A stretch of 63,928 nucleotides of DNA, filler included, from Octopus bimaculoides (taxonomy: Eukaryota), in the NCBI RefSeq assembly GCF_001194135.2. It is 4 parts of 4 records of this genome, joined end to end, with 100 filler letters (N's around TTAATTAATTAA, not from the genome) between each part and the next. Parts side by side here need not be neighbours in the genome. Positions count along the whole stretch, not along the records: positions 1 to 30,358 come from NC_068986.1; 3 more parts are not named here. The stretch is one strand, 5' to 3'. The notes beneath the pieces were generated by a model. The model searched no databases. It was not told the origin of the DNA and saw only the letters and a list, made by a program, of their open reading frames with translations. The translations under genes were made by a program, and so were the position numbers. Every line of letters starts with the position of its first letter. The stretch's first letter is position 1. This document shows positions 3,064 through 29,600 of this stretch, one piece after another.

Positions 3064-4849
3064 GACACGAAATTATAATTAATGAAATATAAAGTGAAGT
3101 AGGTAAAACTAAAGCAAATAATAACACACACACACACACACACANNNNNNNNNNNNNNNNNNNNNNNNNNNNNNNNNNNNNNNNNNNNNNNNNNNNNNNN
3201 NNNNNNNNNNNNNNNNNNNNNNNNNNNNNNNNNNNNNNNNNNNNNNNNNNNNNNNNNNNNNNNNNNNNNNNNNNNNNNNNNNNNNNNNNNNNNNNNNNNN
3301 NNNNNNNNNNNNNNNNNNNNNNNNNNNNNNNNNNNNNNNNNNNNNNNNNNNNNNNNNNNNNNNNNNNNNNNNNNNNNNNNNNNNNNNNNNNNNNNNNNNN
3401 NNNNNNNNNNNNNNNNNNNNNNNNNNNNNNNNNNNNNNNNNNNNNNNNNNNNNNNNNNNNNNNNNNNNNNNNNNNNNNNNNNNNNNNNNNNNNNNNNNNN
3501 NNNNNNNNNNNNNNNNNNNNNNNNNNNNNNNNNNNNNNNNNNNNNNNNNNNNNNNNNNNNNNNNNNNNNNNNNNNNNNNNNNNNNNNNNNNNNNNNNNNN
3601 NNNNNNNNNNNNNNNNNNNNNNNNNNNNNNNNNNNNNNNNNNNNNNNNNNNNNNNNNNNNNNNNNNNNNNNNNNNNNNNNNNNNNNNNNNNNNNNNNNNN
3701 NNNNNNNNNNNNNNNNNNNNNNNNNNNNNNNNNNNNNNNNGTAAGAGAACAATCTTGATAATATATATATTGAGGAAAACGGACGAGACACGAGTGCCAT
3801 GAGTCTCAGAAAGAAAGAACTTTAATAAAGACCACTTTAGAGAAGTGTCATCTTAAGGTGTGTGTACTCTGGGAAGTTCCCGGTTTCCTACTGTTATAGG
3901 GAATCTAAGACTAATCTATGTCTATAATAATAAACGCCAAATTCTGTCCATCCGGGACCCCTGTATCTCAGTCTACAATTGCTCTACATAGGCATATTAT
4001 ACCTTTTCGGAATCAGGATGATCCTGGGATTGAAAATCTGCCTTCATTTGGTTCTTGAACATCCAGCATTGGGATCTGATTTAAAAGCATTTGGATTGTT
4101 ATTTCTAGCAGGTAAGGCTTGACAGATTCACGCCATTTTGGTTGGCATTTGTCCGATGACATCAGAGATCAAGCGGGATATAAATGACTTTCGCTTCGTT
4201 AATTTTACGTCGAGATCAGAACTTTGGGAGAAATTGGCGAACAATTGGAATTCAACTTGGGCCTGGAACAATAGAATTATTGCATTACAGAATTAATTCT
4301 CATCCGCCCTTAACCTCTGATGAAGTACCACTGGGACATATAGTCATTATAGACGTATTATAGTCATGCTATTTAACTGTGTTTAGTCTTAGGCCGTAGG
4401 CCCCATTAGCCCTCTGTAGGAGCTAGCTCAAAAGTCCGCACGGAGTACGGCTTTAAAGCTAGTGTGCTATAACTGTGCATGAAGAAACCCCAGCGCATTG
4501 CATTATCCGGAGGATTGCAATGCTGTCAATGCGACCCTACGTTTGCGAGCTATCAACAATAATGAAGAGATTCACCTCAGAGTCTTAGCTAAAGCTCCAA
4601 AATACACAAGTACAATTTTGGATAGTCTAATTTGTGGAAATGATCGTATCGAGCAATGATCAAAGATGTGTACCCTGATGCCCCATCCCATCTTACAAGT
4701 TGATAAATTTTCATTCTTGTGTGTCTAGGTTGGCCTTATTCGTTTTATTTGCATTTATTCGTAAACATCTTAAACACAGCCATACATGAATAAAAGATTG
4801 CTTTAAACGTTTTAAACTCACATACATTTCAATCTGATATTGTTTTCAA

Positions 4850-5290
4850 ATTTTGGCACAAGGCCAGCAATATCGGGGGAGGATATAAGTTGATTGTTGA
4901 TTACATCGACCCCGGAGTTCAATTGGAACTTATTTTATCGACCTCCTAAAGGGTGAAAGGCAAAGCCTACCGCAGCAGAATTTGAACTCAGAACATAAAG
5001 ACAGACGAAATGCCGCTAACGACTCTGCCAGCTCACCGCCTTACTTTTAAATCTAATCTTATGGTTGCTTTTAAGGCAGCGAGCTGAGAGAATCGTTCCC
5101 ACGTCGGACAAAATGCTTAGCAGTATTTCGTCCGTCTTTACGTTCTGAGTTCAATTTCCGCTGAGGTAGACTTTACCTTTCATCCTTTCGGGGGTCGATA
5201 AAATACGTACCTGTTGAGCACTGGGGTCGAACTCACCCGAACTTGCTGGCTTTGTACCAAAATTTGAAACCAATATTATGGCTGCTTTAG
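4850..5290. mobile_element. Head-to-head pair of family A SINEs (- copy 4850-5045, + copy 5073-5290)
   Basis: Two copies in opposite orientation, heads about 30 nt apart. Confidence 0.85.
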
Positions 5291-6117
5291 TTGGCCACTC
5301 CTTTCAGCTTAGTTTTGTTTCTGATTTAGGCACAAGGCCAACAATTTAGAGAGGCGGGATTTAGTATATAACATCGACACCAATGCTTAACTGACAAACG
5401 ATGCTTGATAACACAAAGCTCAGCGAAGGGAAACGCAGAAAAGCAGATACGGAATTATTGGTAAGAACATTGGGCTCTTATGAACTCACGCAACATAAAC
5501 CCGATGGGTTTATTAGTTTCATAGTCAGTCTAGTTTTCACATGTAACTCAGTGCAGTAAATTTACTTTTGGTGAAACTCCAGTGCAGAATATTGTTTCAG
5601 GTTATGCATTTCTATAAGCACAATACTTTGTGAGCATATAAGATAACGAGTTTACCGATAGAATAAAGTGCAAATATCGCCCTGCAGGCTACCTCTTAGA
5701 TAATGCATAGTATCGGGTTTCATTCGTTTGTTATCATATCTGAGTAATAAATTGCTGCACTAAACGTTGGTTAAGTGTTGAATAGCACTTACAATTGGGT
5801 GTGGAATTTGGGCTGATTGTAAATGCTTTGATAACCCACCCATATAGTTGATATATTATGGAAGGAAACTTTAACACGCCGGTCGAAATGCTTAGCGGTA
5901 TTTCGTCTGTCTTAACGTTCTGAATTCAAATTCCGGATATTATTCTGGATATTTCCCCTGCATTTCTTGTATCCCAGTTCCTCTATCCTGCTTTAATAAC
6001 GTCTATAAATCTGCAAGATTTCTCGTACGATTCGTTCTGTAGTCCGCTGATGACTGTATCACGAGGGTGCATTTGTATCGAAATCTGTTTTTCACCAGAA
6101 GCATAATCGTGTCCAAA

Positions 6118-6430
6118 GCAAAATCGACCTCAATAGAATTTGAACTCAGAATGTAAAATCGGAATAAAAGCCGCTAAGCATTTTATCCGGGGTGCTAACG
6201 ATTCTGCCCGCTAGCATTATTAAGGCGGCGAGCTGACAGAATCGTTAAGCACGCCGGGAAAAATGCTTAGCGGCATTTCTCCTGTCGTTATGTTCTGAGT
6301 TCAAATTCCGCCGAGGTCGACTTTGCTTTTCATCTTTTTGGAGTCGATAAACTAAGTACCAGGTGCGTACTGGGGTCGATCTAATTGACTGGCCCCCTCC
6401 CCGAAAATTTCGGACCTTGTGCCTAGAGTA
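6118..6430. mobile_element. Head-to-head pair of family A SINEs (- fragment 6118-6213, + copy 6221-6430)
   Basis: Opposite-orientation copies nearly abutting at their heads. Confidence 0.8.
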
Positions 6431-8695: not shown

Positions 8696-9066
8696 GTGGA
8701 GGCGCAATGGCCCAGTGGTTACGGCAGCGGACTCGCGGTCATAGCATCGCGGTTTCGATTCCCAGACCGGGCGTTGTGAATGTTTATTGAGCGGAAACAC
8801 CTAAAGCTCCACGAAGCTCCGGCAGGGGTTGGTGGCGAACCCTGCTGTACTCTTCCACCACAACTTTCTCTCACTATTACTTCCTGTTTCTGTTGTGCCT
8901 GTAATTCAAAGGGTCAGCCTTGTCACACTGTGTCACGCTGAATATCCCCGATATCCACGTGTCTGTGGAGTGCTCAGCCACTTGCACGTTAATTTCATGA
9001 GCAGGCTGTTCCGTTGATCGGATCAACTGGAACCCTCGACATCGTAAGCGACGGAGTGCCAACAAC
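8696..9066 (+). mobile_element. tRNA-derived SINE, family B, with TSD
   Basis: Head GGAGGCGCAATGGCCCAGTGG (A box) and GGTTTCGATTCC (B box), (AAC)n tail, TSD attacattcatt at 8684-8695 and 9067-9078. Confidence 0.9.
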
Positions 9067-10523
9067 ATTACATTCATTAAATTCATCTTTGTGTGTATAA
9101 TCAAAACCACATATTCGCTATTTATCTGTCATTTTTCCACATGTCAACATCAGTAGCACAACCTGCTACACTTACATCTTAATTTCGGTCGTTGTCAAGC
9201 AACCAACTCTTTGATGGGTGGTTGAGTAATATAGCATGTCTATGCTTCAGTTTGAACCCAAACTGTTTGTTTTCTAGTTGCGAAAATTTTCATAAATGCA
9301 AACAGGAATTTTCAGATTGAGTAATGATGTCAGCAGACATGAGGTCTATGAAATTATATATAAACATGTCAAGTATTTTCGAGTGATGACACCACCGCTG
9401 TTCTGTCTAGTCAGATTTGTTCAGGAGTTCAATAAAAGAAAGTAGGTTTGGAGAATAGAAAAGACAAGAGTTTGACAGGCAGACGTGAGTAGCTTAGCGT
9501 AACAACCGGCAAATTTTCGCATTTTACAGAATCTCGACAGTTAGGACTGTCAAAATTCAGTGTTAGAAAAAGAACTGTTTGCACTAATTCTACCATATTC
9601 ATCCCTTTCACATACATATTCTTACTCCTCTCTTAACAACCATACTTCTTCAATGAACAAAACTTTCCAACGTTATTTTCTTTTCTTTTCTTTTCTTTTC
9701 CTGGAACCGTCGTGTTCCATGTACACTTTTGGCAAACATTCTACTAAGCTTTTTGTTGTATATCTAGAGGGCCATTGCACCCATAATAAACAAACGCAGT
9801 GGTTCTTTAAAAAAATGCATGAATAAAAAAAAAATAAATAAAGAAGTGAAATAGCATTAGTGTGTGTGTTTATTATTGACATAGTAACCCTTCCGAGGTA
9901 CAACAAAATATGTCCCAGCACACGAGTCCACATCAAGAATCTGGCAAGTTAAATACAAAAATGACTGTTAAACATAATAAATTCATATTTTAATTTTTCA
10001 GCTTTAATTATAAATTTTTGATTAAGCTGATGTAGTTTGGAGCTTCGTGCTTTCAATCTCTTTGTTCTTTTAATTTCTATTTTATATTTTCCTGCTGGGG
10101 TTTGTTTTATTTTATTTATTTATTTATTTATTTATTTTTAGTCCCATCAGGCGGTGTTGACGAAATTTCAACTATCGATACAATCTACACGTTTCTATTT
10201 TATTATTATTTTTTTTTTAGCATTTAACGTCTTCACGAGATAATTTCACAGGCCGAGTACCGCAGTCTACGGCGTTCGTAACAACATGTTCAAATTAAGT
10301 TGGATGTGTAAATTAATATTCGTATTGTCTGTGTTATATTTCGTGGCTTCGAAAATCAGAAAGGTTTCTCTGAAATGATAAAATTTTATTTTCCAATCTA
10401 TGGTTGTGCTCAAGCTTTGGCTGTTTCCTTGTATCTTGAATGCTATGCTTCAGCTCCTTATGTTGGATTAGCATAAATCTCCTGACAGCAGGAGATTTAG
10501 TCTTATGTTATAGAGATTTAAAT

Positions 10524-10526
<3 letters not shown>

Positions 10527-10587
<61 letters not shown>

Positions 10588-10608
10588 GGATGGATGGATG
10601 GATGGATG

Positions 10609-10668
<60 letters not shown>
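10527..10668. repeat. Compound microsatellite (GATA)n(GGAT)n(GATA)n
   Basis: Directly visible. Many other (GT)n, (AT)n, (TATC)n, (AAT)n, (CAT)n and (ATAC)n tracts occur, densest beyond 41 kb. Confidence 0.95.
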
Positions 10669-10669
<1 letters not shown>

Positions 10670-11054
10670 GTCTCTTTGAAACTGGGTCGGCTTTGCTACG
10701 AAATGTGAATAAATAACCAGATGAAGGATGGATTCATATAATCAAATAAAACCCCTGAAGACAGTGACCCAGCACAGATCAGTTATAAAAAGCAGTAAAA
10801 AAAAATTTTAATAAGCAATTTTTTTTTTCTTGCTTCTAACTTACAAAGTGTAATTAAGTTATATCAAAAGTTACATTAATGAATACATATTTCAAACTGA
10901 AAAGATTTTAGATGTATTTTTATTGAAGTATTACAATTGATAAAGAAGTATGACAAGTTACTTCCCTTTCGAAGTAAATTCTTAAAGCAGTTACCTCCCA
11001 TTACATCTGAAATTTTCCGTTACTTTCTCCGTCTTTCATCAATTTTAAATTAGA

Positions 11055-11280
11055 AAGGTGTCGAGCTGGCAGAAATGTTAGCACGCCGAGTGAAATGCTT
11101 AGCGGTATATCGTTTATCATTACGTTCTGAGTTCAATTTCCACTGAGGTCGACTTTGCCTTTCATCCTTCCGGGGTCGATAAATTAAGTACCAGCTACAC
11201 ACTGAGGTCGATGCTGTGCTCCAGCATGGTCGCAGTCAAATGACTGAAACAAGTATTAGAATAAAAGAAAGAATAAATAA
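11055..11280. mobile_element. Family A SINE (+) fused to a reversed fragment of another repeat (gctccagcatggtcgcagtcaaatgactgaaacaag)
   Basis: Family A core 11055-11210. The appended segment recurs in the opposite orientation at 50880-51090 and in the same orientation near 55735. Confidence 0.75.
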
Positions 11281-11765
11281 ATAAAATGGAATTGCTTCTG
11301 TTTTCTGAGTTATTCCCCTTGAGTAAGCCTTTTCTTGATTTGATTTTGGAAGTGTTGCTTGAGTTACCTCCCCTGAAGAGTAGAAGCAACTTTAAATTTA
11401 ATAGGAAGCTTCTACGTTAGAAACAACAGCAAAACTTTCCTCAAATAACACTCTACCGTCTTCAAATAGAAAACAATATGTTTAGGGGAAGAATCACAGT
11501 GGGCCAACGTTCTGGATTGACGGCTAGCACAGGATCCAGGACACAGTATGACAATACGAATGTCAAGAGGGAAAGAGTATTGTAAATCGAGAGTGAATTG
11601 TAGTAAGAGAATAAGAGACAGCTAGAGTGAAGCGGTAATTTAAATTAATTTAAATGAAATTAATTAATAATAAGAAATCATCTTTTGGTAATTCACTGCG
11701 GGAGATTGTATCATGGCATTGCTTTAACAATACACCAATTAACCTAAATAACTTATTGCATCTGG

Positions 11766-11826
<61 letters not shown>

Positions 11827-12249
11827 GTATTATAACAAACGCAAGGAACGGGTTAGGACTTTAGATCTGCGAGTTCCACAAATACTGCTGTCGGTATACA
11901 AAAGACGATTTTGAACTCCACTCGTCATGCCACCTCTGTGTCGGTCACTTTTCTCGGGCTACCGTCCTCAATGATGCAGACAAGCGTGTTTTGGAAGAAG
12001 ACAGTTTTTGGTTGTAGCTGGAATCAGTGGGACTATACCGATACGAGAGAGAGAAAGAAAAAAACGGTATCGTAATCTTCTCATTCCTAGACAGAAATTC
12101 TCTAATCTGACATGCGACCAGTAGCGATACTTTCTACTCTATTAACCTGAAAAAATCGGACACAGACCCCAAAATTGCAAGCTGCCAAAGTACAGGCTGC
12201 TCTTCATTAGACATTGACGACGCGAATGCTACTCTTAAACTGTTGCAGG

Positions 12250-13250
12250 TCAACACCTTCTAGAAAGACATGAGCAGGGTGGAGATTCTAGAAGATCTTC
12301 AGACTGGAAATAGTGCAGGGCGTAGTTGGGAAGGGTTGCGTGTAAGGTGGGTGTTTGGAAGAAGAGAGACGAATGAGTCGGCACTGACTGAGTGGAGGAT
12401 GAGGCGAAACGAGATGATCCTTCGATAATTTGGGCACTCTCTTGTCTCCTTTTTAAAATTGAGATCATTACTTTGGATTGACATTGCTTTGGTATCTTTC
12501 CAAAGATCTAAGCCGTTTGACATACACGAGTCGGTTAGTAAAAAACCTTCTCTACTTAAGGCTTTTAACATTTCAAGTAGAATTCCATCCCCTTCAACGG
12601 CTTTGCCACATTTGAGCGCTTCAATCGCCCCTGTTATTTCAGCTTCCTTAAGGTTAGTCTTCGCCCATAGAAGTACCTTGTGCCCACCAGAAGTGTGATT
12701 GGATTTAGCAAATCAGCAAAATATTCTCTCCATTTCTGACTTTTTAATGGCCGGTTTAGAAGATGATTTCTTATTACGAAGTCAGCGAATGGTCAACCAG
12801 AATAATTCACTGGCCAATCTAAATCCAGTGTTCATTCTAACCCCAATGTCCTCCCATGACATTGCCTTGAACGTTTTAACTCTCTCTGCAGCAACTTTTC
12901 GTGCCTCATTGTCCTGCATCTGCAAACGGTAAGACTTATTTCCAAGCCAAGCTTTGTAAGTCTCCTTCTTTATTCGAATGGCGTGTTTACCTTTCTAGTT
13001 AAACCAGGGTGTTCTTTTACGACTTGTTGCTTTCGTCCACAGCATTATACGGCTGAAGAAGAAACTACCGAACGAAACAATCACCATTCCGTTTCGGCGG
13101 CCTCCGTTTGTTCGAGATGTTCCCTGAATTTGGATGCAATATTTGTCCGCATATTTGTTTCAGATCCCATTATCTGTTGGGGTTTCCTACTTTATCCTGT
13201 AATATTCACTGAACTTTACAGCGTTGTGAGTTTTCCCTGCTGTAGATAGT
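12250..13250 (-). mobile_element. Degenerate RTE-clade LINE fragment (endonuclease-RT linker and start of RT)
   Basis: Minus-strand translation gives EAEITGAIEALKCGKAVEGDGILLEMLKAL and, with frameshifts, K(G)DKRECPNYRRII, typical RTE motifs. Probable 3' remnant continues to about 11830. Confidence 0.75.
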
Positions 13251-13454: not shown

Positions 13455-13559
13455 ATATACACCCAACATACTTTCAATATACTAAACTAAAATGAGCCAG
13501 TGAGGAACTGTCAATGTAGTCACAAAATTTGTTCATTTCACGTCTGTATTATCCTTAGA

Positions 13560-13939
13560 GGAGGCGCAATGGCCCAGTGGTTAGGGCAGCGGACTCGCGG
13601 TCGTAGAATCGCGGTTTCGATTCCCAGACCGGGCGTTATGAGTGTTTATTGAGCGAAAGCACCTAAAGCTCCACGAGGCTTCGGCAGGGGATGGTGGCGA
13701 ACCCTGCTGTACTCTTTCACCACAACTTTCTTTCACTCTTACTTCTTGTTTCTGTTGTGCCTGTAATTCAAAGGGTCAGCCTTGTCACTGTGTCACGCTG
13801 AATATCCCCGAGAACTACGTTAAGGGTACACGTGTCTGTGGAGTGCTCAGCCACTTGCACGTTAATTTCACGAGCCGGCTGTTCCGTTGTTCGGATCAAC
13901 TGGAACCCTCGACGTCGTAAGCGACGGAGTGCCAACAAA
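13560..13939 (+). mobile_element. tRNA-derived SINE, family B, with TSD
   Basis: Near-identical to the 8696 and 18529 copies. TSD tatccttaga at 13550-13559 and 13940-13949. Confidence 0.9.
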
Positions 13940-16415: not shown

Positions 16416-17534
16416 TGTCTGTCTGTCTGGCTGTCTGTGTCTGTGTCTACAGGATTCCAGGGGTTGATGAGTCTAAAGAAACTACGTCCGGCCGGTCGGA
16501 GTAAAATGCCCAAAGATAATTTTATTCAATACACAGGTGCGCGCACGCGTGTATGTATATGTATACATATACATAAATATTTACGGAAAGATATCTGAAA
16601 GTAAACGGAAAGATATCTGAAATCTGAAAATTGGGTAGAAATATACGAATGGTAAATAGTCTCACATATGCAATATAGTGAACTGAAGCAGCACTTCAAT
16701 CGACTAAGATTATCCAAGTAATTAGTACCCCATAACTACATTAGGATTGTTTAAAATCTAAAAAGAGGTAACTCCAATATGATCAGTTAAGGAAATTTTT
16801 ATACAACATCGATTGAAATGGATCAAGTCTTTCAAGCCTAACTGGTGAAAGCAAAGAACATGTTTCGGTCTTATTAGACCTCATCAGTGAATCATAATAT
16901 TCCATTGTAAAAGTGAATGATTGATATATGTATTACAAAAACAAAAAAGGGTGTACGAACGTCGATTATGAATATTAACAATATGGTTAAGATGGAATAC
17001 TCCAAGGGAGCCTCCTTTGTACCAAGTACAGCTAAATGAAACGCAGTGGATTGAAAAGCCTCGATCAGCAAAGATTATTCAAGCAGTTAGGCAAAACTCC
17101 CTGTCAGATGTTTGAAATATTAAAAATAAATAAATAAATAAATAAATAAAAGACAGCAGAACAACAAACAAGGGTGATAACTCCCAAAAAGGTCAGATGA
17201 TCGAACATTTTGTAAAATATAGTCAATCGAAATTTGAGTGAGTGCAATCCTTAAAACGAACTGAGAAAGGCAAAAAATAAAGATGTTTCCTCTTATTTAG
17301 CTTCCTCAACAAAACGTATACTACGCAGTTGGAAAGACTAAGGTCGATACATTCAGAATATATTGATCTTAGTCTTTCTATCTTCAGTGACATAAGAATC
17401 TAGAGTAAACCGGATAATAAGATAAAGAAGAAGAAACTTTCTTTGTCGCTTTCTATTGTTGAACTAAAAACTGAATTTCGCTTATATACAAATGGTATTG
17501 CAACTTTGTGAATTTAACAATCTGTCTCTTTTTG

Positions 17535-17542
17535 TATATAAG
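17535..17542 (+). promoter_or_regulatory. Candidate TATA box (TATATAAG) of the secreted-protein gene
   Basis: TATATAAG starts 58 nt upstream of the ATG at 17593, which opens a signal-peptide exon. The spacing fits a TSS about 30 nt downstream and a short 5'UTR. Confidence 0.55.
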
Positions 17543-17592
17543 AACGATCCCATTGGAATTGGCTGCCCGAGTGGAAAGATACTTGTACAACC

Positions 17593-17653
17593 ATGCAATT
17601 CACAGGAATCTTCTGTCTTTTCGGCGCATTCGTGTGCCTTCCAACTATCTACG
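17593..17653 (+). CDS. Exon 1 of uncharacterized secreted protein (signal peptide)
   Basis: ccATG context. Encodes MQFTGIFCLFGAFVCLPTIY plus 1 nt, then donor G|GTAGGT. Joining to exon 2 gives ...TIYA/SVLRL, a plausible signal-peptidase site. Confidence 0.8.
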
Positions 17654-18528
17654 GTAGGTATATCATGTATATAAACAGCGTAACATACAACAAATATAAT
17701 TGATAATAGTCTATGTTTTGATATCTTGTAAAAATGCTAATAAGAATGATATCGTTGCCAACACATTAAATACATATCGTTGCTTATGTATTACTCTAAA
17801 CAACTCACTTAAAATGTTTTAGTTTTTTTGTTAATGTTTTAGATATATTTCAGTTTTGTAATTACGTGGAAATGATCAATTTTAATTGAGTATCTATTTA
17901 ATGAATTTTTAAAATTAATTTTACCGACTTAAGGTGATGGTAGTGATATCACATGCACAGTTAAATTCCAAACTAAATGCCTTGCAGTGTTTAGTTTCGG
18001 TTTGAGCTTAAACTCTTTTGAGGCTAACTTTACGTTTAATACCTACAGGGTTGATGAAAATAAGTACCAGTAATGGACTACCATCAGTTCAATCGATTAT
18101 ATATCTACCGTAAAAATCTCAGACTTTACGAGCCAAAACGAGCCTCTACCTGGCCATGAAAGCTGCCAGAAATAACAGGCAAACACTTTTCAAATCAAAT
18201 TGCACTCCATCCCCCGCACATTTCTCTCTCTCTTTTTCTCCCCTCTCTCTCTACGTCTTTTCTCCTCTCTCTCTCAAAAAAGAAAAAATGACATTCAACA
18301 ATATAATCCTCGGACTGTTAGGATGGCTTGATCACTTTTGATCACTGGTCTGTTCGATCAAGGCTATCCTGAGTCTAAATAATAACAATCTATAATATCT
18401 TTGTGTCAAAGACAAAAGTCAATAGTTTCGCACATTTAAGGAATTTAACAACGTATCTCATAGACACCTACATCAGATATTAACATATTGTTACTACATG
18501 AATTTTAATGTCTATGTTAATCGTAGCA

Positions 18529-18920
18529 AAGTGGAGGCGCAATGGCCCAGTGGTTAGGGCAGCGGACTCGCGGTCATAGGATCGCGGTTTCGATTCCCAG
18601 ACCGGGCGTTGTGAGTGTTTATTGAGCGAAAACACCTAAAGCTCCACGAGGCTCCGGCAGCGGATGGTGGCGAACCCTGCTGTACTCTTTCACCACAACT
18701 TTCTCTCACTCTTACTTCCTGTTTCTGTTGTGCCTGTAATTCAAAGGGTCAGCCTTGTCACACTGTGTCACGCTGAATATCCTCGAGAACTACGTTAAGG
18801 GTACACGTGTTTGTGGAGTGCTCAGCCACTTGCACGTTAATTTCACGAGCAGGCTGTTCCGTTGATCGGATCAACTGGAACCCTTGGCGTCGTAAGCAAC
18901 GGAGTGCCAACAACAACAAC
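18529..18920 (+). mobile_element. tRNA-derived SINE, family B, in intron 1 of the secreted gene
   Basis: Full-length copy. TSD taatcgtagca at 18518-18528 and 18921-18931. Confidence 0.9.
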
Positions 18921-19386
18921 TAATCGTAGCAGAATATAACAGGAATCATAAGCAACTGCTTGAGTTCTCTCTTTGTTTCTTTATTATTCTGACTGTTGTT
19001 TGAAGTCAGTAAATTAGGATTTGAATTAAAGTGCAGTTGATTCAACATTTTTATTTATGACTTAATATGTTCTTGTTGTCTTTGTGAAATATGAAAGTAA
19101 ATATATAAACTGGCAGGCAAGATATTCCGAGTCCAACAAACTGAAACTAAAATTAATGGCGTCATTGATTTTATGCGTAGCATTTTTATACGAATGAACA
19201 GCAAAAGATATAGCTACGGTAATTAAGAGCTCAATTACCGTATTTTGCGTTTTATTTCTAAATGTATTAAACAGTTGCCTTGCATCTAATGCGGCCGTAT
19301 TGCGGATGGGAGTCCAAGTGTATGTCAGGAAGCCAGATAAGCATGAGTCCACTAGGCTCAATAATTATCACTAATAATGATATATT

Positions 19387-19574
19387 GGTTTCAAATTTTG
19401 GTACAAGGCCATCAATTTTGAGAGTGGGGGTTAGTCAATTGCATCGATCCCAGATTTCAATTGGTATTTTATCGAAACGATGAATCGAAGAAGTCGACCT
19501 CGGCGGCATTTGAACTCAGAATGTAAAGACGGACGAAATGCCGCTGAGCATTTTTGTCCGGCGCGCCATCGATT
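19387..19574 (-). mobile_element. SINE family A copy with TSD
   Basis: Core match; TSD actaataatRatatatt at 19370-19386 and 19575-19591. Confidence 0.85.
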
Positions 19575-19868
19575 ACTAATAATAATATATTAAAAACAAG
19601 CCAAAATATCACAATCTGTTAGTACAAACTTACGAAAAATTGCTTACGGTACGTTAGCAATTATGTAGTGTTCCACCCTGGTGGTTGATCATTGTTACAT
19701 GAAACATCACAGCCAGAAATACAAGTTTATGCATCCTGTATGGCTATTTTCTCGCCCAAAATATAAACATCTATACAGTTGAAGTGTTAGACAATAAAGT
19801 TTAAATACGGTACTCCTATAACGTAGTTCGTTTACGGTAAATTTATGTTTTCATACTTTATTCCAGTA

Positions 19869-20045
19869 TACTGTATTTACTTGCACAGAACCATAAATTT
19901 TCCTCTAAAAAGTCACTTTAAAATATCTTGCAATAAATGTATTATGAAACATGCTAAATAGTTTGTTCCCCTTCCTCCAAATATCATTGGAAAATAAAGA
20001 TGTGTCTTATGCGAAGATGCGTCTTATAGGCCGGTAAATATTGTA
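19869..20045. mobile_element. Possible pogo/Tigger-type MITE remnant
   Basis: Imperfect terminal inverted repeats tactgtatttac / gtaaatattgta; internal gatgcgtcttataggccggtaaata. Confidence 0.4.
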
Positions 20046-20247
20046 ATAAGACATAGTTAAACTCCGTTGTTATTACGCTGCAGTAGATCATGATGGAAGA
20101 AACCTGCATGCATGTACAGAATAGGCTAAAACGATTGCTGAAAGCAACACATTTAGAATAAATGATTCATTATTTTCTAGCTGTTTTAATAACTCTGAAT
20201 GTAATTGTATAAACTGATTAAACAAAATTTTATTTTACTTGCTTCAG

Positions 20248-20292
20248 CGTCTGTCCTGCGCTTAGATGAGATGATGAAAATCATGTCTGCAG
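20248..20292 (+). CDS. Exon 2 of uncharacterized secreted protein (45 nt, phase 1-1)
   Basis: Acceptor ttttattttacttgcttcag, donor CAG|GTAAGT. Encodes (A)SVLRLDEMMKIMSA in frame with both neighbours. Confidence 0.8.
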
Positions 20293-21063
20293 GTAAGTTT
20301 TTCTACAATACACTTAAGGAGAAAGGTTTCATAATAATACATTCTAACAACAAACTGGTAGAAAAACAATTAGGTTCTAAATGATATACCATGCTTCCGA
20401 TTTGCTAAAAACCAAGTAACACTCTCTAATATGAAGATATTCTTCGCATAAAGTACAGTGTGACAATGCTGGAATACTGTATTTGCCAAGTGCAATGTGG
20501 ATCCAAATGTAATGTGAAATCCCCAAACTTGTGGCAAAATATTTGAAACAAATGATGTGGTTTCACAGAATCTTGTTGTAGACATCAGATAAAAAAAAAG
20601 AAAGAAACTGAAAAAGATGAGGTTTCTCTCAAAATATTCGTTTATTCGTTGACACGAATTTCCGGAGAGCCACGTCTCCACAAAACGCACAACTGGTTAA
20701 CACACATGAAGAAGCTGCAGCAAATTTGATGTTGATGGATAAACGACGAAACTTGCCGTATGTGTGTATATCTGCGATGGCCAAGTCGTATGCGCGACAC
20801 ACGGCACCCGTTGTATTCAACACAAATATTCTGACGCAGTTGGGGTGACAATGGTAATGGGGGTGGGCTTGTGTGAAGGGGATTGTAACGCCTCCCGCGG
20901 GCCACACTTTAGAGAACAAGGAAAGTCACTACATTGAGAATGTCCGGATTAAAGGGTTAGAAAAATATATAAAAGGCTCTTTATGAGCCATAAGTTTCTC
21001 TGATTCTGTAATGTATATATTTCCCCCACTGGACGGGATACCGATCTGTCGCAAGATTACTTA

Positions 21064-21265
21064 TTAGACCTAGGAAGCTGCACCGCTTCCTGTCGGCCTT
21101 GACACATTTCCTGTGTTCTTATTTTTACAAGTTTTCTTGACATGTCTATGTCTCTGGATGCAGGCTTAGCTGGGTGGAGGTGCTTGTCCCCCCCACCCTT
21201 GTAAACATAAGGACACAGGAAATGTGTCAAGGCCGACAGGAAGCAGAGCAGCTTCCTACGTCTAA
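21064..21265. repeat. Foldback inverted repeat / MITE-like, 68-bp arms
   Basis: 21064-21131 is the reverse complement of 21198-21265 with 5 mismatches; 66-nt spacer. Confidence 0.9.
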
Positions 21266-22619
21266 CCAACAGTAGTATTATTCCCTTCAGGGGACTGTCA
21301 CATTAAGTTGACAGCATACAACTACTTCAAGAGAACTTCAGTTCTGTTTTATGGAACGCATCATCGACTGGTCAACGATACTAGTGGACTTGCATGTAAG
21401 ATATCTGCAGCTTAAACTATAATAATATTGATACTAGACCTAGAGGTGAGACGGTATGTCATTCATGAGATCGCAAGCGTCAGAGAAACGATTTTAAAAT
21501 AACCTGACGGGTTGATTCGTTGCTCTTTTAGTTTTAGTTCCTCCGAATGATTAATCAAACTGTCCATTAGTTAATTGGTTAAATGTTAACGAATTGACTG
21601 ATGAAAATAAAAGAATTTAAATAGAACCAGTGCGTGTGTATATATATATATCATTGGCATAATGGCCCTCCCGAAATACAACAAAATCTGTTTCGACACA
21701 CGAGTTCACATGAAGAATATTGTAAACCAAATACAAAAACAAAAAGAAAACAGAAATACAGAAGAGGAACAAGTAAATGGTAAATGGCTGGTAATGGTAT
21801 TAGTCATCATGATAATGAGGAAAATAAATTAAGACTGAAAATAAACGCGCGAATTTATAGTTATCGGTTTGGTAGGATATATTAATAGTAGCAATGATAC
21901 TGGCGATGATGACGTCGCGGTGGTGGTAGNNNNNNNNNNNNNNNNNNNNNNNNNNNNNNNNNNNNNNNNNNNNNNNNNNNNNNNNNNNNNNNNNNNNNNN
22001 NNNNNNNNNNNNNNNNNNNNNNNNNNNNNNNNNNNNNNNNNNNNNNNNNNNNNNNNNNNNNNNNNNNNNNNNNNNNNNNNNNNNNNNNNNNNNNNNNNNN
22101 NNNNNNNNNNNNNNNNNNNNNNNNNNNNNNNNNNNNNNNNNNNNNNNNNNNNNNNNNNNNNNNNNNNNNNNNNNNNNNNNNNNNNNNNNNNNNNNNNNNN
22201 NNNNNNNNNNNNNNNNNNNNNNNNNNNNNNNNNNNNNNNNNNNNNNNNNNNNNNNNNNNNNNNNNNNNNNNNNNNNNNNNNNNNNNNNNNNNNNNNNNNN
22301 NNNNNNNNNNNNNNNNNNNNNNNNNNNNNNNNNNNNNNNNNNNNNNNNNNNNNNNNNNNNNNNNNNNNNNNNNNNNNNNNNNNNNNNNNNNNNNNNNNNN
22401 NNNNNNNNNNNNNNNNNNNNNNNNNNNNNNNNNNNNNNNNNNNNNNNNNNNNNNNNNNNNNNNNNNNNNNNNNNNNNNNNNNNNNNNNNNNNNNNNNNNN
22501 NNNNNNNNNNNNNNNNNNNNNNAAATGGCTTATAAACACCTTCCACGCTGCAATTGTTTTCGTTCCAGCACACGATCTCAGATTAGGTCACTTGCAATGC
22601 AAGTACATCTCCGTATATA

Positions 22620-22673
<54 letters not shown>

Positions 22674-22872
22674 TACATGTGCACGTACATATGTATATAC
22701 ATATGTTTATATATATATATATGTAAGTATGCATATCACACACATACACGTATATGCATTTAACTAATAGTATCCAAGTTCACCACCAAATTTACTTGAA
22801 ACTACACAGTCTCTGTTATCATCTGTTTTTAACAATAATTCTATATGTAATAAAGTTCTTTCTCACCACCAG

Positions 22873-23078
22873 ACGTTGAACCACAAGGCGGTTCTGTTGA
22901 ACCTATCGAAGGACTAAAGACCGTTTCAGAGGTTGTTAGAGATGCTAGAAATTATATGAGAAATACAGATGCAAAGACTTTACTGGCTTCGCAGACAGTT
23001 CCTTTTAACTGTGGTCTAGCCCCAAGTCTTGGTAATCTGACTAGAAAAGTATTTCAAGATATGGATCGCAATGTACAG
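22873..23078 (+). CDS. Exon 3 of uncharacterized secreted protein (206 nt, phase 1-0)
   Basis: Acceptor tctttctcaccaccag, donor CAG|GTAAAC. Open frame (D)VEPQGGSVEPIEGLKTVSEVVRDARNYMRNTDAKTLLASQTVPFNCGLAPSLGNLTRKVFQDMDRNVQ. Confidence 0.85.
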
Positions 23079-24239
23079 GTAAACAATTTCTCTGAATTTC
23101 TATAAACTGCACATTCTCTAACGTTCCCATATCTCCATAAATGCCGAATAATGCGTATTCCTAGTTAACTTTTTACTATTCCTAGTTACTTTTAACTATT
23201 CCTAGTTAACTTTTTACTAGTTAACTTTTTACTAATATATTGTAAATATATTAATGCTAAAGTATATATTGTTTGTTATTTTATGTGGATAATGTGTTTT
23301 TTTAATTAAATAATATATCTATTGTTCTAGATAAGGATAAAAAATCTTTACATTTTATTTTGATTACAAATTATCCATACCTTTTAAAACTTGCTTTTAC
23401 AAGGTTTGCATACTAGAAATGGGTAAGAAACAAAGACATTTATCTGGTTGTATTAATATAAAAATTAATAGTTAAATGATATTCATGGGAAACTCCAGTT
23501 ACTAGTAAGATTGTAGACAAACAGAAGGATAGTGTATGGTGTTGGAAGCAAAGCCAGCGAAATATGGAGATTATTTTCGTTGAGAGTACTTTTAAGAGAG
23601 CTATCATAGTTGCGAGATGGTACGTGGGAAGTGTCCATAGTGTTAAAGATTCTCATAAAAAAGGATCAGAACTTTCTGCTGCAATTTGGAAGGCGAGATT
23701 GCTTGCAGGCTGTACTATGGACAAACTCATCCTTTGTTTCTTCAATAGAAATCATGTAGCAATGCAATATTATGCTTGGTGGATAAAAGCTTTCACGTTG
23801 GAGATGGTGAACGACTTCTTTTTGGGATGATAGATTGTGTTCTTTGGTCACAGGGCGGCAGCGCAACTTAGCATAAATTGTGCAATGGTATTGTATGGTA
23901 GAATGACATAAAGTGTATTGCTCTGGTTAGGCAGTAATTAGACGATCCGATCCGATGAATATAAAGACAGCGATGCCTTAGAAAATGCTATTTGGTTTGT
24001 CAATGTGCCTGTGAAACAATTTGTTGTAAATCTATCGCAGTGAATTAATAGTGAATGAATAATTCAATATCCGTAATTTCATCGCAAGGCAATTTACATC
24101 GTGGGCAGATTTAGTTATCGCCACTGTAGTATTAGAGAAAATGTAAATGTTATAAAACGAAAGGAATGAATAATGAAGTATTATGTCCTTTCGTCATTTT
24201 CAAGCAATCGTAAAAAAGAGTCATTCACTTCCTATGTGC

Positions 24240-24415
24240 ATTTGTTGTTGGCACTCTGTCGCTTACGACGTCGAAGGTTCCAGTTGATCCGATTAACGGA
24301 ACAGCCTACTCGTGAAATTAACGTGCAAGTGGCTGAGCACTCCACAGACACGNNNNNNNNNNTCGTGAAATTAACGTGCAAGTGGCTGAGCACTCCACAG
24401 ACACGTGTACCCTAT
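24240..24415 (-). mobile_element. 3' part of family B SINE (partly duplicated across a 10-N gap)
   Basis: Reverse complement of the family B tail (tgttgttggcactctgtcgcttacgacgtcga...gcactccacagacacg). Confidence 0.85.
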
Positions 24416-24425
24416 GCTGTAATGC

Positions 24426-25035
24426 TCTGATTGGCTTCCAGAAAGCTGTAATGGACAACACCAATTGCAGACTGTCACCATAATCTTTTGATGATGCAAC
24501 TTTGGCTTTGGGAAATGTTTGGGGGACTCATCACGATCAATCCATTGACCTGATCGTTTATGGTTAACATAAAGGATCCATTTTTCGTCATAAGTGACTA
24601 TTCGGTCAAGAAGACGATTATTGATGTTTCGCAGAAAGAGCATCGAGCACACTTCAAAACGCCGAACTTTTAATTTTCATTGATCTCATGCGGTACCCAA
24701 TTATCGAGATTTTTCACCTTACCAATCTTCTACAGATTGCGGGAGACCGTTGCAATACCAACACTAAGTGCCTGAGACATTTCTCTGACACTTAGAGGTG
24801 GGTTTCGTTCAACAATTGCTTTCAGTTGTTCATTGTCAAGATTGTATGACCGTTTTCTACCTTCTTCATATTCAAGGCTCTCATCACCACAACGGAATTT
24901 TTGAAACCACCTTCGTACTGTGTGATCACTTGTGGACTCCTCTCCCTGTGCTCTGTTGATGTTGGGAGGCATTGTACCCAAGTATTGTGCTCATGTAAGA
25001 AAAGTAAGCGAAGGCCCTTTTTTGTCATGTTCATA
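24426..25035 (-). mobile_element. Mariner transposase remnant (N-terminal half) in intron 3
   Basis: HTH region TVRRWFQKFRCGDESLE..EGR, WVPHEI motif, and first catalytic Asp in RIVTYDEKWILY. Several stops; truncated next to a SINE. Confidence 0.9.
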
Positions 25036-25627
25036 ATTTAGGGCGCCTATTCTTCAAGAATGTTTTCTGTCTGAAATAAGTAGAAAATTATTAAAGAACA
25101 TACATCAATTATTAAGTATGTCGAAATTCACCAATATATAATTAAAATACTATGATAAAATTGCGTTTCAGCCTAATATATGATATTAGATTCTATGTGA
25201 GGAGTGGTGAATGCAAATGTTGGTCTTGCTTTGTCGTTAACCATTATTTTGATCATTAAGTAAACTACCTGGAAGTTTGTTTGTGGTCTGCACTAACTCG
25301 GACACCAACGATGAACTGGAGGAAATGAAGATACGATATTTTGAACCCGCTAATAGAGTAATCTCCTTGTTGTTATTCTCGAAGTCTGTCTAGCAATGGG
25401 CCTTTCACGTGCAAACGTTTTTCATCTGTACATTTTGATAAACAGTGACACTACACAAGGAAAGGAGTAATGGAAGGGCTGCATGAAGAAGCCGTGTCCG
25501 GACACTTAACACAACTTGAACTCTAAATGCACACACAGGTCAAATGGTGCTACTAAACTAAGCGATAAAATCAACATCAACAGTTCAGGCAATAGTTATT
25601 TGTAATAACTTTCTTTATATTGATTAG

Positions 25628-25828
25628 GTGTTGATTGGAACTACCAAATCCATAATCGAAAAGTTGATCCGGGAAAAAGGTGCTAATAAGCTAGAGTTTG
25701 GAGATTATTTGAACGCCATGAAACAAAATAAGTTTATCCAGATACCTAGCAATGGTGTTATCAGAAGAAAGAAATCATTGTCGTCTTCGTATAGTGGGAT
25801 TTCTGATGGGCGAACATTGACGAGTACG
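25628..25828 (+). CDS. Exon 4 of uncharacterized secreted protein (201 nt, phase 0-0)
   Basis: Acceptor ttctttatattgattag, donor ACG|GTAAGA. Encodes VLIGTTKSIIEKLIREKGANKLEFGDYLNAMKQNKFIQIPSNGVIRRKKSLSSSYSGISDGRTLTST (ORF track 25628). Confidence 0.85.
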
Positions 25829-26340
25829 GTAAGATTCATTTTTAATAAAACTAGAGCAGGAAAATTGACATTATATAACGGAATCTTCGTTCAAATCTAG
25901 CTAAAGGAAATATGTATTATATGTATGTATAACACTTAAAAAAATCAAACGGCTCATATACTGACTGAAATGTAAATAGAAACACAAAACAAGGTTAACA
26001 GTCCAGAAAAACCATTCAGACATACTGGATTATCATGTCTTCCATCTAAGTGGGACATAAAGTGTTATATAAACTGCCTCTCACCCTCTTTTAGCACACA
26101 CACACACATATAACCAGAATACGGAGTTTAAAATATTTTATTAAAACAAATTATTTATTTCAATGCTAATCTATTATTATTATNNNNNNNNNNNNNNNNN
26201 NNNNNNNNNNNNNNNNNNNNNNNNNNNNNNNNNNNNNNNNNNNNNNNNNNNNNNNNNNNNNNNNNNNNNNNNNNNNNNNNNNNNNNNNNNNNNNNNNNNN
26301 NNNNNNNNNNNNNTATTTTTTTTTTTTTATTTTTTTTTAG

Positions 26341-26562
26341 GCGAAGAGAATTGAATCATGGTTTAAAGGAGACTTACTCAATGACCAAGATGTTTTTGAA
26401 GCAGCTGAAATCAACTTAGAGGATTTTAAAAGGCTTGTTAGTACTACTGGTGCAGCCATCCGGAGTTTTGAAACCTTTTTTTATGTCAACCAATATTTAA
26501 CTCGTGAAGTAGTAAACGTTGGGATTTTGAGATATCCTGAACCAAAAAAACCCTATTTTCAG
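26341..26562 (+). CDS. Exon 5 of uncharacterized secreted protein (222 nt, phase 0-0)
   Basis: Poly-T acceptor ending ag at 26339-26340, donor CAG|GTATTT. Encodes AKRIESWFKGDLLNDQDVFEAAEINLEDFKRLVSTTGAAIRSFETFFYVNQYLTREVVNVGILRYPEPKKPYFQ. Confidence 0.85.
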
Positions 26563-28165
26563 GTATTTTATAAACTTTCTTTCTAAGATATTCAACGCCC
26601 CCACCCCAAATGTTTAAAAAAAAAACAAAAATCTTTTCACTGCTTCATTTTCATCATACTAACACCAATCATCATAGGCGTTTCCAATTTGATATTTCTG
26701 ATAAACATATAGATCTACACGCTGATTCGAACACCAGACCTTTTGATTTTCTATCGGAAAATTCTTTTTAAACAGCAAGCGATATTTTGACAGATTGAGT
26801 AATGACACCAGCAAAAATCTGGCCAATGAAACTATACGTAAACATGTCCCGCATTTTCGAGTGATAACGTCAATAGATCTGTTCAGTCAGGTTTTTTTCT
26901 GAAGTATATAAAAAGAGACAAAATTTGAAGAGAAAAGTCAGAGATTGACTGGAAGAGAGTTTGGATATCAAGAGCTTAGCGATGCCAGTAGTAAAGCGTA
27001 ATGACCGGTAAATTCTTACATTCCGCGGAGACTCCACAGTTACAACTGTTGAAATGCTGTGTAGTGAAAGAACTGCATACACTAACACTAGCACTCTCAC
27101 AACTTTCACGAAAATAATCTTGCTTCTCTTAACGGACATTCTACTACTATAAACAGAATTTTCCTACGTTACTTTCTTTTCTTTTTGTGGGACCGTCGCG
27201 TCTCATTAAAGCTTTCAACAATAAAACAGATAATGAATTGAAAGCGAATGACTACTCTTCTTACTCATTCAGCACTCATCCATCTTAATGTTTAAATACA
27301 TTTTACAGTTATTGTAATCTTAACGCAATCCGGTAGAACAGATTTCTAATTTTAGAAGTCTCATGGTCTGTTGGTCTATGACTGATAATTTTAGAAGACT
27401 CAAGATCAGTAGGCTACAAGCCAAGCAGCTATTGCCACTGGAAATATTACTTTTACGCGAGGAATAATATTATTGTAAACTAAAACGAACCACACTTGTT
27501 GTTTTAAACCTAAAATAACACAGGTTAAGGATATTTTATCACAAAGGCTGTGAATTTAAATTAGTTCTAAATGTATTTTTATTTGAAATGAAATAAAAAA
27601 TTTTGTTGAAGTTAAAGGTACGAGAAAGTGAAATAAAGCATTTTCCCCCTAACATTCCATAGTCGAAGAAATGTGTTATTTTAAGTAACATTTAGAAGTT
27701 ATCTTTAAGTTTAAAATAAGAAGCTACTCATAAAGGGATCCATTAGACTTTGTGTATTTTAGTGCTGATATCATTTAGTTGCTTTTCCCCAAAATCTTCC
27801 ATTTTTATATAAGCTTTTTCCTTCTTGAAACATTATGTTTTATTGAGATGGAATTTAAATTCACCGTTTGCATAGTTAAGTAGAGTCAAACCTCTATAAA
27901 ACTAACCTTGCCAGAACGCCACGGTACTCATTTTCTTGTGGTTTTTAATTGCATATTTCTGCGGCCATGATCGAACACCGATTCAAAGGGTTTTAATCGA
28001 ACAAATCACGCCCCAGGACTTACTTTTTAAAGCCTAGAACTTATTCTNNNNNNNNNNNNNNNNNNNNNNNNNNNNNNNNNNNNNNNNNNNNNNNNNNNNN
28101 NNNNNNNNNNNNNNNNNNNNNNNNNNNNNNNNNNNNNNNNNNNNNNNNNNNNNNNNNNNNNNNNN

Positions 28166-28199
<34 letters not shown>

Positions 28200-28201
<2 letters not shown>

Positions 28202-28365
28202 GACGAGCTTCTTTCAGTTTCCGTCTACCAGATCCACTCACAAGGATTTAGTTGGCCCGAGCCTATAGGAGAAAACACTTGCCCAAGGTGTCATGCAGTA
28301 GAACTGAACCTGGAACCATGTGGTTGGGAAGCAAGCTTCTTACCACACAGCCAAGTCTACGCCTT
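28200..28365 (-). mobile_element. SINE family C (CORE/MIR-like) copy
   Basis: Reverse complement of tggctgtgtggtaagaagcttgcttcccaaccacatggttccaggttcag...ttgggcaagtg. Related copies at 33800-33955 (+), 44410-44540, 49965-50110 and 58350-58480. Confidence 0.75.
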
Positions 28366-29164
28366 GTTAAGTAAATGATTTCCCGAAAATAAAGAAATGA
28401 TTTATAGTAGTAAATGACTTGCCGAAATGATCTCAGTTGACTCACTGTAACAAATCATCAATTCTATGCTATTTCGTTCCTACTTTAAATATAGAAACAC
28501 ACAGACATACCAAGTGTATTGAAGCAATAAATATCCTGAGTAACACATTATGTTGTAATACTTCAAACACATTACACAACGCTCTCTTTAAGTTAAATCG
28601 GCTTTGACGGGAAAGAAAAATGTGTAACAGCAATTCTATTTTACTAAACACTAATATGTAGCTTATTGTTTATCGAATAGCTTATGTACTATTTACGATT
28701 CATCGAAATAAAACTATAGTAGAAGCCTGTAAGTGGTCGCCCCAAAGATTAGCAATAGCAGTCAAATCGCCCTCAGATCATACAATCGTTAAAGAAACAG
28801 CAAGAATACATAATATAAAGTAGTTCTCGATATCATGTGCCTGAAAATATTATACACCATAGCTAGTACATTTTTAACCAGAGAGCTGCTCGATTAGGAA
28901 TAATCTTGGGGATAGATTAACGACAATGTGAAAATATGACAGAACGCATCAATTGTCTGTTGCATTTGGTCGATTTATTCAGATTTTTTTTCATAAATCT
29001 AAATTCTTGTAGAACGTAATAAAATCTTATTTTGCCCTCCTCATATAATACTAGCATGGAAAGAGAACAGTTATTCACCTTTTATCAAATGAGCGTTGTA
29101 GATGTTCTTTTAATTTTATATTTCACTAATTAATTCTCTGTGTATTTTATTGATCTTATTCTAG

Positions 29165-29356
29165 ATGTATCGTATCAAGCTGTCTGCGTACAAACACACT
29201 GAACGTATACTGTTTATCGAAAACACAAGCAGTGGCATTTCTGGAAATTTTGAAATGTATAAATTCGTTCCAAGTAAAGGCGTCATAGAGGCACTTGATC
29301 CCAATTATTTCAATAGGTTTATTGCTTCTGCAATTGGCTCCCTTGGAGAGTTGTAA
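29165..29356 (+). CDS. Exon 6 (terminal) of uncharacterized secreted protein
   Basis: Acceptor ttttattgatcttattctag. Encodes MYRIKLSAYKHTERILFIENTSSGISGNFEMYKFVPSKGVIEALDPNYFNRFIASAIGSLGEL* (ORF track). The six exons sum to 927 nt, i.e. 308 aa plus stop. Confidence 0.85.
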   Translation: MYRIKLSAYKHTERILFIENTSSGISGNFEMYKFVPSKGVIEALDPNYFNRFIASAIGSLGEL

Positions 29357-29374: not shown

Positions 29375-29600
29375 GCAGCGTGCTGGCAAGGGCGAAATGC
29401 TTAACGGTATTTCGTCTGCCTTTACGTTCTGAGTTCAAATTTTGCCGAGGTCGACTTTGTCTTTCATCCTTTCGGCGTCAATTAAATAAGTACCAGTTAT
29501 GCACTGGGGTCGATGTAATAGATTTAATCCCTTAGCCTATCCTTGATTGTCCGTCCCCTCTATGTTTAGCCCCCTGTGGGCAATAAATAAATAAATAAAT
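29375..29600 (+). mobile_element. SINE family A copy just 3' of the stop codon
   Basis: Family A core with (AATA)n tail at about 29582-29599, which could supply AATAAA poly(A) signals. Confidence 0.85.

Follow-up and report, generated by a model that had tools for sequence, protein, structure and literature searches.

We analysed a 63,928-nucleotide (nt) stretch of Octopus bimaculoides DNA, made up of four genomic parts joined end to end (hereafter the window), and focus here on the gene LOC106883830, which lies on the + strand of the first part. This part (positions 1-30358; 37% G+C) matches chromosome CM046606.1 of assembly GCA_001194135.2 near 25.8 Mb, with identical assembly gaps. The gene encodes a protein of 308 amino acids (aa), predicted to be secreted, and we found that this protein is not an orphan, being a member of a large, unnamed and uncharacterised protein family.

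Gene structure and transcript support

The rebuilt gene has six exons, separated by introns that all begin with GT and end with AG, have good polypyrimidine tracts and fall in phases 1,1,0,0,0. The coding sequence comprises 927 nt including the TAA, has no internal stops and translates into a 308-aa protein that agrees over 308/308 residues with XP_014790455.1 / A0A0L8I6K5 (P0001; ‘uncharacterized protein LOC106883830 [Octopus bimaculoides]’). RefSeq thus already contains this gene model, with the same six exons, under an entry without function, family or domain. The coding part of exon 1 (17593..17653, 61 nt) supplies the ATG and a signal-peptide-like MQFTGIFCLFGAFVCLPTIY(A), and ends in phase 1 at the donor ACG|gtaggt; it is followed by a 45-nt micro-exon (exon 2, 20248..20292, phase 1/1) that encodes (A)SVLRLDEMMKIMSA(D), is covered exactly by RNA contigs from the runs X1-X4, and has conserved counterparts in O. 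sinensis P0002 and the paralogue P0003. Exon 3 (22873..23078, 206 nt, phase 1 to 0) carries C82, the LAPSLG motif and the sequon N90; exon 4 (25628..25828, 201 nt, phase 0/0) carries the basic run RRKK (aa 150-153); and exon 5 (26341..26562, 222 nt, phase 0/0), the best-conserved portion of the family, contributes W178, D186, D188 and the stretch G-I-L-R-Y-P-E...P-Y-F. The coding part of exon 6 (29165..29356, 192 nt including the TAA) contains the sequon N265 and continues into a 3’ untranslated region (3’UTR) that reaches to at least 29419. As assembled, the five introns between these exons (17654..29164) measure 2594, 2580, 2549, 512 and 2602 nt, and introns 2-5 contain one assembly gap each (21930-22522, 24353-24362, 26184-26313 and 28048-28165, respectively).

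This architecture, micro-exon and intron phases included, had been predicted by a first-pass annotation of the window, and it is borne out by the RefSeq identity and by junction-spanning contigs for all five junctions, drawn from four RNA runs of the same organism (X1-X4). Exon 4 is joined to exon 5 (25828|26341, GT..AG) in four runs, and exon 5 to exon 6 (26562|29165, GT..AG) in X1, X3 and X4; at the joint of exons 3 and 4, the loose end of a contig before 25626 is the exon 3 end, TGGATCGCAATGTAC, plus AG. For the two joints of the micro-exon, the contigs carry the last bases of exon 1 (...CCAACTATCTAC) ahead of the 45 nt and the first bases of exon 3 (ACGTTGAACCACAAGG) behind them, and contigs leaving exon 1 at 17653 run on into exon 2 sequence. 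One X1 contig of 1125 nt is fully covered by the six exons (196+45+206+201+222+255 nt); because its length is their exact sum, none of the gaps conceals a coding exon and the frame runs through the mRNA without a break. Two other accounts of the locus were rejected: a five-exon model that skips the 45-nt exon 2 (293 aa) is ruled out by the RefSeq protein and the RNA contigs, and an artefact or pseudogene is ruled out by the RNA evidence.

A TATA-like box had also been proposed upstream of the gene. The sequence itself, GTATATAAG, is present at 17534..17542 (+), 51 nt upstream of the ATG, and an X3 contig that starts at 17565, 23 nt downstream, fits it; since an X1 contig extends back to 17458, upstream of the box, transcription driven from this element is plausible rather than established. 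At the other end, the transcript terminates at or past 29419, where the contigs break in a high-copy repeat, and an ATTAAA lies at 29481. Two segments, 28140-28400 and 29391-29450, reach contig depths of 10^4-10^5 in all four runs whatever the level of the gene, and are transcribed repeats of very high copy number; the latter segment overlaps the 3’UTR and breaks every transcript contig at 29419. Within exon 4, a G>T variant at 25671, found in X2 (~8400 of 13100 depth) and X3 and absent from X1 and X4, turns codon 119 from CGG (Arg) to CTG (Leu), and is thus a coding polymorphism.

Further repeats lie in the introns and upstream of the gene. An interspersed element of ~385 bp occurs at 8696-9067, at 13557-13938 and, within intron 1, at 18530-18913, in copies that are 91-97% alike; a related piece lies near 24232-24393, and more copies are found in flanking chromosome sequence. 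This element has no Rfam or tRNA-type match, and Rfam returned nothing in the window. Directly after the 593-N gap of intron 2 stands a long (TA)n/(CA)n microsatellite (22578-22760), which probably caused that gap and in which spurious open reading frames (ORFs) rich in Y, I, H and T can be read. In intron 3, beside the 10-N gap at 24353-24362, the - strand carries a mariner/Mos1-type transposase remnant (24371-24981), one ORF of which matches HTH_48/HTH_32 and another Transposase_1, in separate broken frames.

Expression and features of the protein

Exon contigs of the gene have a word depth of about 10,000-13,000 in X2, a run from a 2015 study, and of 10-48 in X1, X3 and X4, while coverage of exons 4-5 is zero in X16 (a sister run of the same 2015 study) and in X18-X20 (three deep RNA runs from 2026, ~12 million reads each sampled). 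Intron contigs in X2 have a depth of ~40, as expected for the pre-mRNA of a very active gene. Because of the depth in X2 versus the zero coverage in X16 and X18-X20, we conclude that expression is strongly restricted by tissue and that the message, where present, ranks among the most abundant.

The N-terminus of the protein is hydrophobic by a crude hydropathy measure (within the first 25 residues, the highest Kyte-Doolittle mean over 10 residues is 2.73, and ...TIYA|S comes next), and the octopus product is accordingly predicted, from sequence, to carry a cleavable signal peptide. Removal of this predicted peptide would leave a mature chain of 287 aa (~32 kDa, isoelectric point 9.2) whose one Cys, C82, is the only one past residue 21, with NLT and NTS as its two sequons (N90 and N265). 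The signal-peptide-like start and the scarcity of Cys thus both stand as originally described.

A large protein family spread across distant lineages

An exhaustive profile search of 1.84 billion representative proteins recovered 324 relatives at E<=1e-3, of which 179 reach E<=1e-10 and 40 reach E<=1e-30; most relatives cover the profile from ~80 to 305. The family was revealed only by this search: a word-indexed search found octopus relatives only (an orthologue in O. sinensis, 81-86% identical, and a paralogue, 45% identical), and with alignments as the query it gave 6 and 3 matches. Searches of curated resources were negative throughout, with no Pfam family at E<=10 for the octopus protein; nothing in Pfam, NCBIfam, PADLOC or PDB sequence searches for octopus, fungal or cyanobacterial members; and no Pfam domain shared among 75 members. 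Searching by locus, accession and topic, we found no literature on this gene or family, nor a match in those supplements of PMC7656900 that we searched. The earlier statement that the protein belongs to no recognisable family consequently needs to be divided: sequence and profile searches gave no characterised relative, curated family or solved structure, as had been stated, yet 324 representative relatives exist. That the gene is real and belongs to this family we consider nearly certain.

Taxonomic labels are available for only about 30 of the 324 relatives. The labelled cephalopod members include Octopus paralogues (LOC106883823, LOC106883826, LOC115212730, LOC115213512, LOC115213384 and LOC115210937) and proteins of Argonauta hians and Sepia pharaonis; basidiomycete members come from Mycena, Trametes, Leucocoprinus, Pilatotrama and Schizopora; and the fern Ceratopteris richardii, the green alga Acetabularia and one Quercus suber record also contribute. 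The family also occurs in marine plankton, and two unlabelled members derive from a Logan assembly of run ERR1719433 and a Tara metagenome scaffold, respectively. Among prokaryotic genomes, a scan turned up an intronless cyanobacterial member of 284 aa from Microcoleus sp. BROC3, which is 50% identical to a fungal protein; because it adjoins an MsbA/HlyB-type ATP-binding cassette (ABC) exporter and a tetratricopeptide repeat (TPR) protein, its contig is genuinely bacterial. On this contig (JAUBTQ010000073.1; L004), the member sits between a 403-aa protein (1216-2427), for which no library searched gave a match, and the ABC exporter (4431-6197). This arrangement may reflect a secretion or operon partnership, and it hints at how the bacterial form exits the cell.

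The members share a core that can be written as LAPS-G-L...MD..LK...W...D-D...TGA...D-x-G-[IV]-L-R-[YF]-P-[DE]...P-[YF]-F-K-x-Y-R-I and that corresponds, in octopus numbering, to L84-A85..G89.L91, D100, W178, D186, D188, G208, G232.L234-R235.P237-(D/E)238...P242....Y247-R248-I249. Across 75 members P237 is invariant and D100, W178, R235 and P242 are at least 90% conserved, all five being present in the octopus protein. Fungal members align by tblastn to exons 3, 5 and 6, with 39-43% identity at exon 5, and Cys is scarce in the family, the median being one in the ~221-aa core. Some members carry additional modules: P0092 has a C-terminal ricin-type lectin domain (RicinB_lectin_2) that scores above the Pfam cut-off; P0034 has an LDLa module by Pfam, and the alignment shows another cysteine-rich stretch of similar appearance; and the start of the Sepia protein resembles the end of a SUEL lectin with a score below the cut-off.

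The cephalopod branch

A rough neighbour-joining tree places the octopod proteins in one clade, together with the Argonauta protein and the unlabelled P0009, with Sepia nearby. The octopus paralogues are mutually 28-31% identical, no closer than they are to fungal proteins, and the cephalopod genes have introns, predicted signal peptides and tandem paralogues. Exon 1 of one such tandem paralogue (MCTEMQFTGIFLLFGTFMCLPTLYA..., + strand; L001 31348-31422) lies 9.6 kb past the stop and outside the window, and the predicted signal peptide of its protein, P0062, is nearly the same as that of LOC106883830. Intron positions are held in common with an O. sinensis paralogue gene (L002), in which the 201- and 222-nt exons occupy equal protein positions. 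A hydrophobic N-terminus is found, by the same crude measure, in all full-length octopus members and is missing in most non-cephalopod members. Given the depth of the paralogues and their shared introns, the cephalopod origin is old, and the distribution of hydrophobic N-termini makes the secreted form look like a cephalopod feature. Among the labelled animal sequences only cephalopods appear, which, given the small labelled share of the relatives, we treat as an impression.

Predicted structure

We modelled the protein with AlphaFold from 75 aligned sequences and obtained a predicted local distance difference test score (pLDDT) of 83.4 and a predicted template modelling score (pTM) of 0.78; with 5 sequences the pLDDT was only 36.7. 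Residues 1-45, which comprise the predicted signal peptide and probably a flexible N-terminal segment, are of low confidence. The remainder forms a single alpha/beta domain of helices 53-74, strand 80-87, helices 93-136, strand 148-160 and helices 168-217, succeeded in the C-terminal half by the antiparallel strands 219-235, 244-260 and 263-281 (17-19 residues) and helices 283-304.

When this model was compared with PDB by Foldseek, the top seven matches were all Cyt proteins, cytolytic toxins of Bacillus thuringiensis (Cyt1Aa 6T14, 6T1A, 6T1C and 3RON; Cyt2Aa 1CBY; Cyt2Ba 2RCI), with E values of 1.9e-4 to 2e-3 and probabilities of 0.82-0.97 over 221-260 columns. Besides Cyt, no PDB match exceeded a probability of 0.3, and nearly all of these further matches were to SRPBCC proteins. 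Two unnamed, uncharacterised viral proteins in BFVD gave strong fold matches: M1I283 (367 aa) with E 1.1e-20, a template modelling (TM) score of 0.71 relative to the query and 22% identity over 318 columns, and M1HBT0 (371 aa) with E 2.9e-9 and a TM score of 0.52. On the strength of the modelled fold, both are probably true family members; their accession series may be that of chloroviruses. When IMG/VR was scanned for two peptide motifs of the family, no viral relative turned up.

Functional interpretation

We reasoned that the predicted fold, together with the composition and distribution of the family, could point to a way of acting, and we tentatively propose that the octopus protein is a secreted membrane- or lipid-binding effector, probably cytolytic or membrane-perturbing, which one secretory tissue exports in bulk. 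Under this proposal, venom or saliva, the male reproductive tract or the integument would release large amounts of the protein, which would then bind membrane or lipid and probably lyse or perturb membranes by means of a domain whose element order parallels the Cyt/volvatoxin type. We favour a membrane-active effector because of this Cyt-like order of elements, because of the lectin and LDLa fusions, because the family is Cys-poor, and because most non-cephalopod members have no predicted signal peptide. Cyt proteins run from a helix hairpin through a strand, helices, a strand and helices to three long antiparallel strands and a C-terminal helix, an order that the model parallels, and the pairing of a lectin with a module that damages membranes is common among toxins.

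Several results weigh against this proposal. The Cyt matches have TM scores of only 0.22-0.33 and root-mean-square deviations of 10-12 A, and published Cyt structures are not known to have a counterpart of model helices 168-217. Comparison by hhalign of the 75-sequence family profile with a Cyt alignment (Cyt1Aa, Cyt2Aa, Cyt2Ba and the Cyt-like protein 2mlw, their sequences checked against PDB) gave a probability of 0.12 and an E value of 0.46. The Pfam family PF01338 was matched neither by the octopus protein at E<=10 nor by 10 diverse members at E<=1, and for the 75 members at E<=10 it was absent from the 25 most-matched of the 43 families listed; volvatoxin A2 was likewise absent from the top 50 fold matches. 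Lectin fusions are frequent in proteins that are not toxins, we found no activity data for any member in the literature, and the secretory tissues named above are inferred candidates only.

The same observations can be accommodated by a non-lytic carrier or binder, in which the curved sheet and helices would enclose a cavity like that of helix-grip proteins (Bet v 1/START/PYR-PYL/CoxG, SRPBCC type), and the secreted protein would transport or sequester a ligand, either a lipid or a small hydrophobic molecule. SRPBCC proteins do account for nearly all Foldseek matches in PDB after Cyt, and the conserved polar residues D100, W178, D186, D188, R235 and D238 could line a binding site; we nevertheless consider this explanation unlikely, as the SRPBCC matches reach probabilities of only 0.03-0.28 and TM scores of 0.07-0.14 relative to the query, which do not amount to a significant structural match, and the order of elements in the model seems unlike the helix-grip order beta-alpha-alpha-beta6-alpha. 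The expression pattern, in turn, would suit a structural or reproductive secretion without membrane activity, made in bulk by one tissue for an egg coat, a spermatophore, mucus or the lining of the suckers: one library has an extreme contig depth where others have none, the product is basic with two sequons, and, according to a published analysis, genes of octopod age peak in male reproductive tissue (PMC7656900). The protein itself is an awkward candidate for such a role, since the model is a compact, confidently folded globular domain, the domain is common to cytoplasmic fungal and cyanobacterial proteins, and the chain is free of repeats and low-complexity sequence and not rich in Gly, Pro or Ser; we therefore doubt this explanation to much the same degree.

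The first-pass annotation had further suggested that the protein is possibly cut at RRKK, which would make it a pro-protein giving rise to two products. A tetrabasic run is indeed present, and proteolysis does activate Cyt toxins, though there the cuts are terminal. The run lies, however, within the predicted beta strand 148-160, in 10-residue blocks with mean pLDDT values of 98 and 92, so that a cut would split the single domain, and it is not preserved in relatives, reading RRSK in O. sinensis and O. vulgaris, YRNK in the paralogue P0003 and R-x-D-K in fungal members, the latter having no signal peptide by crude hydropathy. No conserved dibasic site in an exposed linker, of the kind expected for prohormone convertases, is found at this position. 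Because the strand is confident and the site is not conserved, cleavage at RRKK is unlikely, and a precursor that yields two products by this route is very improbable indeed.

If the membrane-active effector that we propose were placed in an evolutionary frame, coleoids may hold the animal branch of an undescribed, Cyt-toxin-like family of membrane-active proteins that is otherwise spread over cyanobacteria, fungi, algae, ferns, plankton and perhaps algal giant viruses. The gene would have entered by horizontal transfer, or have survived among animals in this lineage alone, and would then have gained introns, a signal peptide and tandem copies before being put to use as an abundant secreted toxin or lysin in venom, defence or gamete interaction. 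We regard this scenario as speculative and rather improbable. What is new is that a supposed octopus orphan sits in a family of several hundred proteins from at least two domains of life, for which our searches of Pfam, NCBIfam, PDB and the literature found nothing, and whose predicted fold points weakly to Cyt cytolysins. Should the members prove to be membrane-active, toxins or defence proteins would gain a new class, the biology of venom, reproduction or skin in cephalopods would acquire a dominant and testable component, and the octopus gene could be a clear case of a microbial-type effector domesticated by an animal; should the resemblance to Cyt prove spurious, the family would still deserve a name and a structure.

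Comparison with known systems

Among known proteins, two groups invite comparison. The SRPBCC/Bet v 1/START proteins resemble the model in having a curved antiparallel sheet packed on helices, a likeness that produces the weak Foldseek matches given above, but their order of strands and helices looks different. The closer parallel is with the cytolytic delta-endotoxins Cyt1 and Cyt2 from Bacillus thuringiensis and with volvatoxin A2, a relative of these in fungi (PF01338). Like the predicted octopus model, they consist of a single alpha/beta domain, with a similar order of elements, and they are Cys-poor, as is the octopus family; the latter is also taxonomically scattered and includes bacteria and basidiomycetes. 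The two show no similarity in sequence or in profile, and extra helices make the domain of the octopus family longer by ~40-60 residues; a predicted signal peptide further sets the octopus copies apart, and lytic activity is known for no member of their family. Because the comparisons with Cyt at the level of sequence fail, we use ‘Cyt-like’, a description drawn from the predicted model, as a lead on how the protein may work and not as a statement of membership.

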